A stretch of DNA of 59,669 nt, counting the filler, from Platydemus manokwari (taxonomy: Eukaryota), in NCBI GenBank assembly GCA_037951405.1. It is 6 parts of 6 records of this genome, joined end to end, with 100 filler letters (N's around TTAATTAATTAA, not from the genome) between each part and the next. Parts side by side here need not be neighbours in the genome. Positions count along the whole stretch, not along the records: positions 30,895 to 39,926 come from JBBMOY011310871.1; 5 more parts are not named here. One strand, written 5' to 3'. The notes beneath the pieces are model-generated. The model was not told the origin of the DNA and did no database searches. It was given only the letters and a program-made list of their open reading frames with translations. Numbering within the stretch: the first letter of the stretch is position 1; the number at the start of each line of letters is the position of its first letter. Of the stretch, positions 30,895 through 39,926 are shown piece by piece. The position numbers were made by a program, and so were the translations under genes.

Positions 30895-31479
30895 TTCTCA
30901 TATTTTAAAATTCGACTAATTAAATAAAACGCCAAGATTTAAAATAAGTTTTTGAATAACTTTAAATCAATAAAATCTTATTTGATTTAAAAATCTTGAT
31001 GAAAATATAAAAGGTGGTTGGGTTATCAATCCACAATTTATATCTGAAAAATGTATTAACAGAGATATTGCAATCAAAGTCTCAATATCAACTGTAAATC
31101 TTATCATAATTCATAAAGTAAATCACACAAGACGGGATCAGCGTCCATAAGTCAAAAACAGAATGAAAAGTAATAAAAATGACTGATCGCTAAACCATAC
31201 GAAGATAAGCTAAGCACTCAAGTTACCAACCAAAAAGTTTGACAGATATCCATAGAAATCAACTTCTTTTATAGTTCTATCGGGTGGATCTGCTAGATGT
31301 CACAGATCTTCGTTTTCCATTTGCTGAATAAGTTCGTGGATCGATTTACTTGAGATTTCCCTTCCATCTCTCGTGCCATTGGAAGATATTCGAGCTTCAT
31401 GCCGTTTGTAATTATGTGCCTATCTGTTCTTAGCTTCTAAATATGGATTAATATTATAACGAATCTGATTAGCACAGGT

Positions 31480-31904
31480 GATTGTCCAATTATTGCTAGG
31501 CGGAAAATATATGATCTCAAAGTTCTGATTATTGTTGTCAGCATGTAAAATCACTCACGGTTTTCGAAATTCTTCACAATGGTGAATCCATCAACGCTGA
31601 GAGATATCTACAATTCCTGCAGAATATGATTTTAAACTTTCAACAAAACTATCTGCTTGGGAAATGGTCATTCAGCATGACAATGCCAGACCGCACACAG
31701 GACAATTAATTCAACTTTGGCTTGAAGAATATTTCTCAACCAACACAAACCTCATGTATCACTTTATCTTTAGGAACTAAGAGTGTGAGCAACGATTTTC
31801 GCCAATTTTTGGAGTAAACATCGGAGGCCAAGTTCACGAGCGAGTTTCAAAAATTTACCGGTCACCTCCAGAGTGTCATTGAAACTAATGGAGACCACGT
31901 TTAG
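31480..31904 (+). mobile_element. Degenerate Tc1/mariner transposase fragment
   Basis: Frameshifted pieces FEILHNGESINAERYLQFL, VIQHDNARPHT (second catalytic Asp motif) and the mariner-like C-terminus HLQSVIETNGDHV*; the YSPDLAP.D segment is missing. Confidence 0.85.
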
Positions 31905-34900
31905 GCTCTGTTACCGTTTGCTAACACTTTTAATATAATTGCACATGCGATTTTCACAAATAAATGTTTTAAATTGTATATTTTTAGATTTTCATAAGAT
32001 TTCGTCGACTCAGAAAAACGAAATATAATCGGACGACTCTGTAAACAGGCAGAAAAGTAACAAATAATTCAGAAGTGGAATCTAGAGAACTTTGCTACCG
32101 ATAATTATTTTGGAAAAAATAAGTCGACCTATTCGAAATAATTTATCGGAGTTGGGAAAATATTTTTTAAAAGATCATAAGCTTGGAAGATATATTTCCT
32201 GATAATAAAAGTAGCTGGTAAAAGTACTATGCATATATTTTATTATTTAACCTTAACTCTTCGTGATACCACAGTTATCGATTGGCTAAACTGAGTTCAG
32301 TTGATTTAATTATTAAAATTTCAGTAAAACAGTGCTGATTTTGCGCTTGTCAATATTTAATGGAATTGTGCTATCATTTTTGATATGTTTATTTAAAAAG
32401 CTTTGAGCTTTGATGTTCAGTAAATAATATTAAATTTAAACTGGATTTGGGATTGATAGCAATTGTTATTCAGTGAGAGGTGATTATCTTCAGTGGTTAT
32501 TAAATTCTTTGTATTTATTTGTAGAGATAGTAGTTTATATTTGATTTAGCTAAATGGTAGGCAAAGATCAAAGCTCAACAATATAATTATATATAAACCT
32601 AAAATTAAGATGACTTCTATAATAATAATAGTGGTAATAGTAATGAAGACAATGATAAAGTTAAAAGCAATCAAACTGCACGACATCATTGTAATCCTAC
32701 ACAACAAGTTATTAGAAAGACATTAGAAAGTAATTTATCCATAGTCATATCTCTATTGTTATGTTTCTGTAGCTTTAATTAAATTTTAGAAAAATCAATT
32801 GAAGAAGCATCTAGAATTTTTTGTCGTTGTTTCTACAAAATTGTTTTGGCTTTCTCAATCCATATTTCAAGAAATTCTCATAACTTGTGAAATACATCAT
32901 GCTTGTGATACACATTATTTCTCATTATTGTTGTCAGATTTTCACAAATAAATTTGGCATTTTGCCTGACTCGTGAGCATAAAAAATCATCGATTTCATT
33001 AAAGAAGCAAAAATTATTTCATAAATACAGTGATTTACTTGCTTTAATAGACTTCTTATCATTACATCTCAGACAAGATATCTTTGTATAAAAAAGACAA
33101 AAGAAATTACATAGAGAATTTTTTGGATTTCTCGATAGTAAAATAGAAATGATAAAGAATGATAATTTCTTATCAGATATGGATTTGTAATTAAGAGAGA
33201 GATATAAAATAAATGAAGAGAAAGGAATTTCGAAACACTACAAAACGGCTTCAAGTGAGTTTAAAGAAATACTTAGTTAGAATATTCCATAAATTATTTT
33301 CTTTCTAAATCAATTAGCAAATTTCCATGGCATATCCAAAGTTGCTGTATTTTTCTCGATTGTCGAACAGTTGGTTTAACCAAATAATACTACATAGTGA
33401 CCAATTGATTTTCTACGTGAAGATAATTGTCACGACGAATTTTTTGAAATTTATATTGGGAATTACTGTATCTATCTCATAGTTAAGTCCTGTTAATTAA
33501 CTATTGTTCAAATATTTGTTACCGTCATTTTAAGTCTTATTCATTTTTAGCCTATTCCAATTCTCTAGCACTTTCAACCTGGCTTCTGTTGGATATTAGA
33601 GAACTACAATGTTAATTGATATATTTATCAACAACAAATTATCAATTCTACAATTAAATAAAAACAATTTGGCACAAAATTGAAAAACTCAAAGTCAGAG
33701 ATTATCACAAAGAAATGGGGTCAGTTTCTGGAAGATAAACACATGGAAACTTCCGACCAATAAGACTAGTAATTCTTGGCGAAGGCCATGTTTATAAATA
33801 ACCTATATTTCTGGGTGCTTTTGATGTATTGTGCATTTATTTTCATTTGTTATAACTGCCTAAATCTTACTTACGGATTTTAACTGGCAATTCATTTTCT
33901 TTCTTCGATATCATTGATCCATTGGAATGTTCTTTTATTATACTATGTCACAATTTCCAATTATCAATAAATAAATGTTCGTTCTGATTGGCTGCTAGCA
34001 CATTAGTGTGTGTGTATACCATTTGACGGGTTACATCGGAGTTTTAATCAAGATTGTCTGATATTTATTTATCCCATCGTTTCATTATTTGTCTTTATTT
34101 ATCTGTAATACCAATCAATAATATTTCGAAAATATTCCGTCATATATTTTCAAAATAAATAAAATAATTTTTACCATGAATTTCCAGCCATTCGAATGAT
34201 CGTTGTTTAAAATTAATACATTTTTTAAAATGTGTAAATATCAAAATTAATTGATTATTTAGTGATATTACCAAACCATAATTATTGATCAAATAACAAT
34301 TAAAGATAGAAAAAATTTCAAGTGAAAAATGGTTTCATGATTTGCTTCATTTACTAATTATAGGATATTTTTAAAATTAAAGGAAAAATTTAAAATTTTG
34401 GAAATTTTATTGATAATACAGATTTCACAAAAACCACAAATCTAGAATAGTGCATTCGTTGTATTCAATGTAAATTTAAATTTGTTTTATATAGATATTA
34501 ATTTTATTGATCACTGGCAACTCATTTGGTGAAGTGCACTTAAGACTTATATATGCTAGTTGGACTTAAATCATGTTACGTTTTTCATTAGATCATTGAC
34601 TGTTGATTTCCAAAAATGTATTGTTAGTAATGAATTAGTCTATCGGAGTGATTCCCAAAGTGGTTTATATCGACTCCAAGGGTCGATGAAGACCTGCAAG
34701 GGGTCTAAGTGGGTTAAAAAAATTCAGAGTGAGAGATCAATGGGAAGAATTTTTCAAAAATTTCAAAAACAGTATAATTGATATAATTTTAATTTTTAAA
34801 GAAATCATAAAAATTTAACCTTGTAGCATTATTAAGTCGGGATATTAGCTCGTTGTATTATATATATATGCATATGACGAATCGAACTGATGCTAAGCTT

Positions 34901-36587
34901 CTTTCTCGGCAATAGAACTAACATTATTTATGAGATCATTAGTTTTACAAAGTAAAATATTTAATAATAATATAAACTGGTAATTAGGCACATATAAATT
35001 GTATAAAATGTTTTTGTTTTGTTTTGCTTTTTCACATTAAAAGAGCTTCACTACAGTTGAAAATTAAATCTTTTATGGTGTATAGCAATGGGTCTACCCA
35101 AAACCATAAAACATGGCAAGAGATCTATGAGAGAAAAAAGTTTGAGAACCTCTTGTCTATCGTATCTTGTTTTGGTTGGAAAATTCATTAAAATATCGTT
35201 AAATTTCGTCATGGCAACTATTTCTTTAACGTACTGACTATCGCTACACTATAAAATATTAATAGCTTATCACGAATAGATTCTCAAACTCACAGATATC
35301 AAGCCAATTATACAATTCTCAACCGAAACCACAATCACTCATTGTTTTTTCAGCACTTCTTCTAATCAATGGTTTTGTGAGCAAAATTTAGAGTTATTAT
35401 TAAAAATTTATTCCAATGCAGTCTCTAAGCAAATTGATTGATTTGCAGATAATTTTCTGTTTGACAGTATTTATCGGTTGATCGATTAATTATTTCGCTG
35501 CTGTGTTGACAGTAACAGTATTGAGAACATTTACAAGCTTAAAGCAATATTGTTTGTCTCTCTTGTTAATAATTGAAGTATTTGTTTGCTAGACTTGATT
35601 GAAACTATTTCAAATAAAATGATACGACAATTAATTCACAATCCACAATACAAATACGATTAAAAGATTAAGATTGAGATCGTCTCTGATCAGTCGAATA
35701 ACAAAGTGGAAAATAGTGATCTGAAATCTCCGTTTGATGCCGCATTAGTTATTGGTTGTGCTGGTCGTACAGAAATCATTCAGAACAAGTAAATTTCAGG
35801 TTGAATTTCTTATCTATTATTCTACATTTTTGTGGACTCAATATCACCTGGTATAACCTCATAATTAATCATATCGATTTACTCCGAGAACCTATTATCA
35901 ATGCATCAAAGGCTCCAATTAAGCAAATTTCTCACAGACAGCTTATGAGAAAAAAAAACAGTGAAAATAATCTACTAATGAATGGAAAAATTTGCTAATA
36001 TCTCACAATCAAGATGCTTATTAAATATATATTACTCCGTGAATTCAATGATTTTTTTCGGGTTTATTAATAAATAATAAATAATAAAATAAATAAAATG
36101 TTAATTACAACACTTCTCATATCGATTTTTATTCATCAAAACAAAAACAGAACAAAATTCCACAAATGTTTTTCTTCTTTTTGAAAATCTGACGCCTAAA
36201 AATATTTTAGTAATTAATTTATATTTTCAAAATCTTCCGTTCGTGAAAATATCGATTAATTTAATTTTCACTTATTTGAAAATCGATCTAAAGAACGATT
36301 AAAAGAAATTCAATCTAAATAGACCAGTTTCAATTTTGCGAATTCGATAAAGATCAATAATATTCATCTCAATTCTATAATGCCAACGATCACAATTCTC
36401 AAACGATTCTGATTGGCTCAAATATATTTACAAGCTATTAAACTATCGATTTATCAATTTCCAATCATTTTACAAAGACAAAATCAAGCACCACTATCAT
36501 CATATCGTATTGCACAATTTATTGATAACTACGCTAAATTACGATGATTTATGAATTATCCAATAAACGTGCCCGTTCGTACAATTG

Positions 36588-37993
36588 CTAAAAATTACAT
36601 TGAAATTTTCGAATAATTGTCTTCACTCTCTCAACGATGACAATCGGTTTGAAATAAGTCAAATATTTCCCGACTTCCATTTTCGGTGATTTATTGACAT
36701 AGAATTCGTAATGAAGCCGTCGCCATTGACAAATGGATTTGAAATGGACATTTTTCTCATTGTAATACATGGGAAACAACTCAATCAATCCAGCTCCGTT
36801 CGGCAGAAACAGTGTGTGAGTCAATGCTGCACCATGCATGGCAATCAATATCGTTGTGTTGGTAATCAATTCCAATTGTTCCTTCATGGACAGCTGGTCG
36901 ATTTGTGTTTCCGATATGTCGATATTGAATCGAGATAGAAATCGATCGGTTTCGCTGGCTGATTTCAAGGCGGAAACCAGTTCCGGTTCGTTGGCGATTT
37001 TTCTGGAAATTTCCCCACTCGGATTTCGTGGATGAGAGAGATAATTCCGGCGCCAAATGAATAAAATCGATATCCGATCACAGGTTTTCGATCGCGATTG
37101 GGATGGATTGATGTTGTAAGTGGAGAGAAAAAATTCCCGAAATTCATCCAATAATGGCGCTGTAGGCCACGAGAGCTGCATCATTGGAGCGATATAGCCG
37201 AATGGAATCCAGACCAATTCTCCAATCAATATGTGATTGCCGATGGTGAAATTCGAAAAACGAGAAAGATTCGGAAACATATCGATCCATACGTTGTCGA
37301 GTGAGCTAGATGGATGCCCATCCGTCAGAACGACATGGATATCATCGACAGTCCAATGGAAAATGCGACAAATGAGATATGTGATGTAGAAATCGGTCAT
37401 TGTGTGATAGAAATTGGCGTATTCATTACGAGTGACAAATAAAACTTTCTTCTTAAAGACAAGTTCTGGTGAAATAAAATCAAGAAGACGGGGAGAATAA
37501 TAAGTGAGAGAAGCGTAATAATGATTGAAATGATTGATGTCACCCAATAAAAAACTGATATTTTCTTTATGGATATCGAAACATGGAATTGACAAGAAAC
37601 CGGGTTGATAATTTAGAAATTCTAACTGAAAATGAATGCAATCATGATATAATAAAAATAACAAAAAACCCAATCAACCTTCTCGCTCTGATTCAAAACC
37701 GTTTGCAGTAATTCACCTCCAGAAAGACCAGAAACTTTGGCTTTGTTAATAAATACATTTTTAAGAATGACGTACTTGTTTTTGTATTGATTAAAGTTGC
37801 CAAAGCATTTCGATTTAGTTATGTGAAATTCTTCAGAAATAAAATTGTCAAAACTGGCCGACCATGATTTGGAGTAAGTCAAATAGAAATCCTCTTTATC
37901 AGTTGGAGTCAAAAAATCATAGATAAATGATGATAGAAAAATGATAAGGAAAATTAATAAAATTCTCTTGAAAAATTTAATCTTAAATCTCAT
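36588..37993 (-). CDS. GT61-family type II membrane glycosyltransferase, plant beta-1,2-xylosyltransferase (XYLT)-like, ~450 aa; exons 37679-37993 and 36588-37625
   Basis: Short basic N-tail plus TM anchor; phase-0 53-bp GT-AG intron (37626-37678); motifs TRNEYANFYHTMTDFY, VVLTDGH, RRNYLSHPR, RKIANE, LSMKEQL, LIAMHGAALTH, IELFP. Confidence 0.9.
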
Positions 37994-38684
37994 AAGAAAT
38001 TAAATAGACTCGATAAAAATAAATTATCATAAAATAATTTTATTTCATTTATAAAACTCTATTATTTCATATATATACTTCAAATACTTTAAGTTATTGC
38101 AAATAAATTTAAATTAATAAAAGTATCGTTAAACAACTTTGATATCAATTAAAAATATAATAAAGTTTTTTTAATAACCTTTACATACATAATTTATATA
38201 TAATTCTTTAATCTGGCTATTTGAAATTAACTTTGTAATTAAATAACTACTTGCTAAATTTTATAAAATTAAATATTTTAAAATTCATTTAATAAAAATA
38301 CCATTACTTAAAATAATTCCATAGTGTTCATTATTTAGATTTTACTTCTAAAGTTTAATCCAAAACTTTGCAAAAACTACTTTGGGCTACTAAAAAATGT
38401 ATTAACAGTCAATAACAAAAATATATACTCATCACCTTTGGAATAAAAGAGCATAAGCATCATGTCAGTATAATCATCACTACCAATTATAATAATTTTC
38501 AATCAATATCAATTAATGAAATCATAAACATAAAACAAGAATTCATTTATAAATAAAGTTAATTTTAACAAACTTAAGACATTTCAAAGAAACATAAATC
38601 AACTTCAAACCTAAAAATCGCTTTAGTTGTAATTTACCTAAAGTTTTATCAATATGTTTCGATTGCTGAGCTCTAGCAATAAAT

Positions 38685-39060
38685 TCATTTATCAACAAAC
38701 TTCAATTGAGAACAAATAATTATAATTTCTAGCAGAACATTATTGACATTTTCACAACAAATAACAAGCTTTTCCACACTGAGAATCTTAGGAAAAATCA
38801 ATGGCGTAATAATAATAGTGAATACAAAGTAATAACTCACATTGTTGAATATGTCGGATCTTATTAAAAAATCATAATCGAGTACTTTGAAATGAAATAC
38901 CTGCAATGGTACGCACATTGTAAGATAATAGACACTATCAAATGGCTATTCACAAACCCTCCTTTAACATCGTTGACTGGATTGCGGTGTTCGATTGGTG
39001 CGTAGAGGCAGAAATCAACAAACATCGAAATACACCAATCACTTGAGAAATAGAAAAACA
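38685..39060 (-). pseudogene. Possible decayed membrane-protein (GPCR-like) gene
   Basis: Three overlapping short ORFs in different frames; SHLIVSI/YLTMCVPL resembles TM3-(E/D)RY..VC.PL, followed by a TM4-like YFVFTIIITPLIFP. Confidence 0.22.
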
Positions 39061-39361
39061 TTCCAGTTGATGAGTAGAGATGAAATCGTGCAAAAGAAAA
39101 CGATTCTGTAGTTTAAAGCACATATTCAGACATTGTAAACATTTGCAAGCCAAAAATTTTCAATTTATTAGTCAGCAATGAATAATTTAGGCAATTATCC
39201 ACGTTACCGTGGAAATCAGCCCAAAACCTATGGAAATTGAAATTAGTAACCAATAAATCACGGCAATGCTGGAAATCTCCAAGGAGACATGACTACGAGT
39301 CATTTTGCTTAGTCACTCACTAGCGAGAAATAGTATTTAAACTGACTGTGGTCAGTCATCA

Positions 39362-39435
39362 TAGCACAAAATTTTCCACACAAAAATCACAGGCACGAAA
39401 ATTTGCATGAAGAAAATTCAGACACAAAAATTTCT
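39362..39435. repeat. Degenerate ~15-bp tandem repeat (CACAAAAATT core)
   Basis: cacaaaatttt / cacaaaaatca / cacgaaaattt / cacaaaaattt recur with about 15-bp spacing. Confidence 0.55.
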
Positions 39436-39926
39436 CAACTGTTAATCAGCAAAGCATATTACTACTCGTTGGATATTCTGCCGAATCGATGGAATTTATT
39501 GATCATTTATTTATTCAATCGTTTATAATTTGAAGCACATTCAAAGTGGTAAAATTTTTATTACTCATTTGTATTATTGCCTATTCATCGATCTCCAATA
39601 GGAGATTAGTTGAGAAATAATAAATTCTACAAAGTCGATGGAATTTGTAGAGTTAAAACCACTTAAAATCACATCCTTTAGTTTCATTCGGAGAAGGGCG
39701 CACCCAGACCCTTCGCCAATTTTTACATTCTTCAGGGCATAATATTCACTTTGTTAAATTCATTAGTAAACTCAAATTGTATATTTCAGTATCAATAAAA
39801 TATTTTACCTTAGTTATTATTTTATTACCTATTTTTCAAATCTCATCTAATTTTCTGTTAGGAGTTAGATTTTTTGTGGAACTACCAATTATCTACTGTC
39901 AATGGACCTAAATTAAATAAAGATTT

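Follow-up and report, generated by a model that had tools for sequence, protein, structure and literature searches.

A candidate N-glycan core beta-1,2-xylosyltransferase gene of family GT61 in a Platydemus manokwari assembly

The minus strand at positions 36588-37993 of the analysed window carries an intact two-exon gene for a 450-residue protein of glycosyltransferase family GT61. Its best reading, to which we assign a probability of about 0.6 on sequence grounds, is a Golgi UDP-Xyl:N-glycan core beta-1,2-xylosyltransferase. The window is the whole joined stretch of 59,669 nucleotides from assembly GCA_037951405.1, along which all positions are counted, and the part that hosts the gene (30895-39926) is record JBBMOY011310871.1 of Platydemus manokwari. 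Core beta-1,2-xylose ranks among the major cross-reactive carbohydrate determinants of plants and is also an antigen of schistosomes and snails. The enzymes that make it in plants and algae (XYLT) include Arabidopsis XYLT At5g55500, rice RCN11 and Chlamydomonas XylT1A, and are classified as GT61, EC 2.4.2.38 and KEGG K03714. Since databases already annotate look-alikes from molluscs, brachiopods and flatworms, the gene described here is one more candidate of a recognized family and not a new kind of gene.

Direct translation of the two exons gives a spliced product of 450 amino acids with no internal stop. The gene model consists of the following elements, in which L002 denotes an orthologous locus (L002:1-1382) on a Logan contig of sequencing run SRR33002330 with an intron in the matching position.

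37679..37993, minus strand: exon 1, codons 1-105, phase 0, with the start codon, a short basic tail, the predicted signal anchor, the stem and the first conserved luminal motifs; based on sequence and translation, the orthologous exon being conserved in L002
37993, minus strand: start codon ATG, with an in-frame stop just upstream
37626..37678, minus strand: intron of 53 nt, GT...TTTTCAG, phase 0
36588..37625, minus strand: exon 2, codons 106-450 and the stop; GT61 catalytic domain
36590-36588, minus strand: stop codon TAG, at the end of exon 2
36518..36523, minus strand: AATAAA, 65 nt past the stop, read from the sequence as a possible polyadenylation signal

The gene contains an open frame 361 codons long, far above chance expectation for DNA with about 30% GC. 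Splicing joins …LNQSEK/LEFLNYQPGF… (in longer form …GGELLQTVLNQSEK/LEFLNYQPGF…, the slash marking the junction) and leaves the product collinear with single-exon homologues, free of gaps. The junction is confirmed by L002: this locus encodes a 67% identical protein, and its GT..AG intron of 58 nt agrees in both codon and phase. The initial annotation had described an intact two-exon gene for a type II membrane GT61 protein, and its coordinates proved exact. Comparison with L002 gives a dN of 0.23 with saturated synonymous sites, for which reason dN alone is quoted and no dN/dS, and it follows that the gene is under purifying selection. The reading frame is intact, spliced and selectively maintained. 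The AATAAA may possibly serve in polyadenylation, and such a motif is weak evidence in AT-rich DNA.

We also compared intron positions across the family. The intron is specific to a small clade made up of the GT61 protein and the database proteins P0001-P0003 (hereafter the window clade), within which it is common to L002. Homologues from Lingula and Crassostrea, as well as P0045, are intronless, while the introns of Schistosoma, Macrostomum and Populus lie elsewhere; the difference from plant XYLT is illustrated by Populus, where they fall near residues 217 and 266. Shared intron positions were considered as a sign of vertical descent and rejected, the intron being common only within the window clade.

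The protein begins with ten residues of basic character (MRFKIKFFKR), followed by a hydrophobic stretch at residues 11-29, and a hydrophobic stretch near the N-terminus recurs at the equivalent place in the homologues. This arrangement fits a type II signal anchor and the usual layout of a Golgi glycosyltransferase. The predicted anchor and the principal motifs of the protein are listed below.

37907..37963, minus strand: predicted transmembrane signal anchor, residues 11-29, ILLIFLIIFLSSFIYDFLT; the top 19-residue Kyte-Doolittle window, mean 2.4
37682..37720, minus strand: GGELLQTVLNQSE motif, residues 92-104, common in alignments to the animal relatives and plant XYLT (GGE..E.VIGR.EE)
37404..37430, minus strand: RNEYANFYH, residues 171-179, from HMMER alignments to EOGT (9wjk)
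36987..37055, minus strand: WRRNYLSHPRNPSGEISRKIANE, residues 296-318, in which R297 aligns with EOGT R372 and R313 with EOGT R377
36816..36839, minus strand: MHGAALTH, residues 368-375, the GT61 nucleotide-binding motif, in which H375 aligns with EOGT H432

The crystal structure of EOGT provides a reference for the nucleotide-sugar site: its UDP contacts are N245, H248, R372, R377, Q412 and H432, and an N-R-R triad has been proposed as a hallmark of active GT61 enzymes (PMC13123520). In the HMMER sequence alignment all six contact residues are identical in the GT61 protein (N176, H179, R297, R313, Q355 and H375). N176 corresponds to N245, which contacts the UDP phosphate, and H179 to H248, at the proposed catalytic-base position (roles from PMC13123520); both lie in RNEYANFYH, a column that is invariant in our alignment of relatives (A1). 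Q355, just upstream of MHGAALTH, corresponds to Q412. As judged from this alignment, the N-R-R constellation for UDP binding is present as N176, R297 and R313. Because of the identity at all six EOGT contacts, the protein looks catalytically competent.

The family assignment is supported at the level of domain and predicted fold. Pfam PF04577 (Glyco_transf_61) matches exon 2 over its full profile (1-137), scoring 49.9 bits (cutoff 27; E 4.9e-13). For exon 2 an AlphaFold2 model, computed from an alignment of 20 relatives with exon 1 left out, reached a mean pLDDT of 80.3 and a pTM of 0.78. When this model was compared with solved structures using Foldseek, the top 16 matches were all POMGNT2 chains, with E values down to 1e-11 and TM scores (query) of 0.58-0.64. 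The model thus suggests a GT-B fold like that of POMGNT2.

To which GT61 subfamily the protein belongs was addressed by sequence and profile comparison. The initial annotation had called the gene a close follower of plant XYLT on the strength of a motif series of Arabidopsis XYLT. All of these motifs occur, in order, in a consensus of 14 plant XYLT sequences (Arabidopsis itself is outside the set), which reads LVTRFEYANLFHTVTDWY, HLVFVDGH, PLGY, VRREDYLAHPRHGGKVESRLSNE and HFALIAQW, an order identical to that in the GT61 protein. The closeness was overstated, however, since exon 2 is just 25% identical to Populus nigra XYLT, over 314 residues that run up to the very C-terminus (E 5e-31). The likeness to the plant and algal enzymes consists in type II topology and a GT-B GT61 domain that is collinear from the GGE motif to a C-terminal Cys, with TR.EYAN..HT.TD.Y, DGH, P.GY, RR..YL.HPR and HF..I..W all retained. 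Apart from the low identity, plant XYLT differs in having about 19 inserted residues (…KGLTE.I.C.GASAHDLWQ.PDD…) with no counterpart in animals and in reading GAHGAGLTH where the GT61 protein has AMHGAALTH.

Alignment of the animal relatives against the plant sequences with hhalign gave a probability of 100% and an E value of 1.4e-51 over 336 columns. With a profile of animal relatives, built without the window clade, matches to plant XYLT spanned the whole domain and reached 190-207 bits, compared with 104 bits for mouse EOGT; POMGNT2 scored about 67 bits, through the C-terminal 100 residues only. In the reverse direction, the plant XYLT profile gave the GT61 protein 140 bits and EOGT 40.6 bits and had no match to POMGNT2. 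Between R297 and R313 the protein also has a Y-L-x-H-P-R loop that is present in plant XYLT (VRREDYLAHPRH) and missing from EOGT, where the alignment has an 11-residue gap. These scores suggest that the animal clade lies much further from EOGT and POMGNT2 than from plant XYLT, and the GT61 protein itself almost certainly belongs to the XYLT-like clade. The better fit to XYLT than to EOGT or POMGNT2 that had been claimed at the outset is therefore borne out by profile scores in both directions, by hhalign and by the loop.

It remains the case that EOGT and POMGNT2 are the sole relatives with solved structures that we found, that they share with the GT61 protein the fold, the UDP-binding N-R-R triad with its H, Q and H contacts and the MHGA.L motif, and that UniRef carries the EOGT name onto several members of the clade. 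Orthology to EOGT, which adds O-GlcNAc to EGF domains, or to POMGNT2, which adds GlcNAc-beta-1,4 to O-mannose, is nevertheless extremely improbable. As a single sequence the GT61 protein matches them over about 100 C-terminal residues only (for POMGNT2, in the C-terminal lobe), and full-length similarity to either was not found. With the clade profile both score far lower than plant XYLT, at half its score or less, and EOGT is without the YLxHPR loop. EOGT is moreover a soluble ER protein with a cleaved signal (PMC13123520), whereas the GT61 protein has a predicted type II anchor and no HDEL-type ER-retention end. One database protein, P0278, carries the JGI name 'protein O-GlcNAc transferase'; we examined it as a possible EOGT orthologue and rejected it.

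Database searches place the protein in a family that is spread among spiralian animals. Its best homologues reach E values down to 2e-175, and an exhaustive search of representatives returned 672 at E ≤ 1e-30. In a word-index search, the named relatives were all spiralians with 34-44% identity over nearly the full length, and included Lingula, oysters (Crassostrea), Dreissena, Mya, Patella, Lottia, Aplysia, Lymnaea, Macrostomum and Schistosoma, to which Lineus was later added. The closest relatives, at 67-72% identity, come from metagenome assemblies, one sequencing run and one UniParc entry. Several relatives are named 'beta-(1,2)-xylosyltransferase-like' or 'beta-1,2-xylosyltransferase RCN11' by NCBI, and JGI names others 'glycoprotein 2-beta-D-xylosyltransferase'. 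The family is multi-copy in molluscs, with two members each in Patella and Mya. Word-index searches with the GT61 protein and with the alignment of animal relatives returned no plant sequences, and none of the 150 matches listed from the exhaustive search was recognized as plant XYLT by the plant motifs tried. Plant XYLT sequences were reached solely by way of the divergent fusion protein P0099.

The phylogenetic position was estimated from a maximum-likelihood tree (LG+C20) of 45 sequences, composed with EOGT, POMGNT2 and XAT left out and with two long-branched GT61 proteins as the outgroup. The GT61 protein and P0001-P0003 form the window clade with support of 100/100, on a long stem of 1.29 changes per site. 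This clade lies inside a larger one whose named members are all animals, specifically spiralians (94/91), and branches after Schistosoma and outside a group made up of molluscs, a brachiopod, a nemertean and Macrostomum. Plants, diatoms and other protists together are sister to the animal clade (99/98). The initial annotation had named grouping with EOGT or POMGNT2 as the outcome that would speak against it; the profiles favour XYLT, and the tree, which spans the XYLT-like clade and its outgroup, gives the plant, diatom and protist lineage as sister. With the spiralian 'beta-(1,2)-xylosyltransferase-like' proteins (those of Lingula, Crassostrea, Lymnaea and Macrostomum, the Aplysia 'RCN11', and the schistosome proteins Sjp_0055390 and Smp_125150) the GT61 protein shares the clade, 34-44% identity, the same invariant residues and candidate status. 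It differs from them in belonging, with P0001-P0003, to a separate long-stemmed subclade that has its own intron, and this subclade is further marked by AMHGAAL in place of GMHGAGL, by RNEY and by an insert of about 9 residues at ETDRFLSRF.

Given the fragmentary state of the assembly, we asked whether the gene could be a pseudogene, could stem from a contaminating or associated organism, or could have been acquired recently from a plant or alga. One sequencing run, which is not RNA and is probably the source of the assembly, carries the gene stretch identically, and none of the RNA runs among those searched contained it. A second run (X2), labelled as another organism and likewise not RNA, holds a 174-bp contig identical to 36621-36794, a part of exon 2, at a depth of about 2. 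This match hints that the source may be present in other samples in trace amounts or as an associate, or else that one species goes under differing labels. These observations, together with the restriction of the closest relatives to metagenome assemblies, one run and one UniParc entry, lend the idea some weight. We nevertheless consider it very improbable, as the intact frame has been kept across a wide contrast in composition (GC3 41% against 70% in L002) at a dN of 0.23, the spliceosomal intron is common to L002, the gene fits its AT-rich context, and the tree, from which the animal origin of the gene is deduced, nests the protein among animals and not among plants or algae. Contamination by another small animal, or association with one, is possible and would leave the nature of the gene unaltered.

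As a core xylosyltransferase, the gene product would be a 450-residue type II Golgi-type membrane enzyme of CAZy family GT61, XYLT subfamily (EC 2.4.2.38). Its luminal domain would take UDP-xylose as the donor and attach the xylose beta-1,2 to the core beta-mannose of N-glycans, as plant XYLT does, the acceptor cores having presumably been modified already by GlcNAc-transferase I. The product would be the core-xylose epitope that plants share with schistosomes, gastropods and oysters. This activity is the most likely one because it is proven in the plant and algal sister clade and because the animal taxa that have the family carry core xylose. Going by the sources as cited (Strasser 2000 and later work), proof of the activity is limited to plant and algal enzymes. 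Core xylose itself has been reported in schistosomes (PMC4122909) and gastropods (PMC8699351), as the initial annotation had stated, and in oysters, where it is found on 42% (C. gigas) and 19% of N-glycans (PMC10301044). Xylosyltransferase activity has been measured in Lymnaea tissue, according to a citation in PMC8699351. Since we found no animal member of the clade that had been cloned and assayed in the literature searched, the proposed donor and acceptor rest on the roughly 25% identity to plant XYLT.

The main rival is an active enzyme of the XYLT-like clade that uses another donor, or another acceptor such as antennae, O-glycans or glycolipids, and we consider it possible but not probable. 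GT61 is functionally diverse, comprising XAT, XAXT, XYXT, EOGT and POMGNT2 (PMC13123520); its plant members use UDP-Araf or UDP-Xyl and EOGT and POMGNT2 use UDP-GlcNAc. Chlamydomonas is reported to have several XylT with different sites. The long stem of the window clade, with its own substitutions and insert, could reflect a changed specificity, and as the family is multi-copy in molluscs, not every member need be the core enzyme. Two observations speak against another specificity: the named taxa in which the family occurs coincide with those for which core xylose has been reported, and the protein retains the motifs that it has in common solely with plant XYLT, among them the YLxHPR loop. 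The proposal that the gene is a candidate for the invertebrate core xylosyltransferase is thus upheld as a candidate assignment. The idea has precedents in the existing annotations and in the schistosome candidates Sjp_0055390 and Smp_125150, which a 2014 paper put forward and left for 'improved characterization' (PMC4122909).

With dozens of spiralian homologues under the same automatic annotation, the gene adds little beyond what databases already hold, and its added value depends on the identity of the organism and on a biochemical assay. Being intact and compact (450 amino acids, a single tiny intron), it offers a usable reagent for assaying a candidate animal enzyme, and as a divergent member it helps to define the truly invariant residues. 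Should the source be a non-trochozoan spiralian and the enzyme active, the deep branch would make core xylosylation ancestral to Spiralia, a tentative proposal that we regard as rather doubtful. As a guess, AT-rich DNA and introns near 55 nt could point to a rotifer-like micro-metazoan; a bdelloid rotifer origin was also considered for P0002, the relative known from UniParc only, but the searches brought up no named bdelloid protein, which weakens it. If true, it would put an immunogenic epitope of plants and helminths in an animal group where it was never sought, and would sharpen the question of vertical inheritance with loss outside Spiralia versus a single gain from an alga-like donor.

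The 9-kb part that hosts the gene (30895-39926) is AT-rich, with 17-44% GC in 500-nt windows. The maximum falls exactly at the GT61 gene, which forms an isolated GC peak between flanks of 17-30%. The gene itself has 38% GC and 41% GC3 and its L002 orthologue 51% GC and 70% GC3, a contrast that implies strong differences in genome composition among close relatives of the source. Elsewhere in this part (30895-36500 and 38000-39926) we found no other convincing gene, tRNA or Rfam match. On the plus strand at 31515-31777, and perhaps over 31300-31950, two segments free of stops, which overlap in different frames (…ERYLQFLQNMI… and …VIQHDNARPHTGQLIQLWLEEY…) resemble a decayed mariner/Tc1 transposase; as their match to Pfam Transposase_1 is weak (E 0.15, below the cutoff), they are a frameshifted remnant at best. 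A 73-codon open segment at 34560-34778, also on the plus strand, scores 19.9 bits with the Pfam GH59 central domain, below the cutoff of 28 (E 8.6e-4). None of its adjoining segments is coding-like, and it is probably a chance match or a decayed fragment.

Some of the homologues have unusual architectures or settings. P0099 (917 amino acids) fuses an XYLT-like GT61 domain to beta-1,4-galactosyltransferase (GT7) domains, and in P0100 a GT61 domain is combined with one resembling O-fucosyltransferase. Other long members, among them P0105, P0107, P0118, P0119 and P0187, measure 800-1030 amino acids and have long N-terminal extensions. The Lingula anatina homologue (L003:501-2231, LFEI02000103.1) is a single exon within the span of a protein-kinase gene on the opposite strand, and from this position it is probably nested in an intron.
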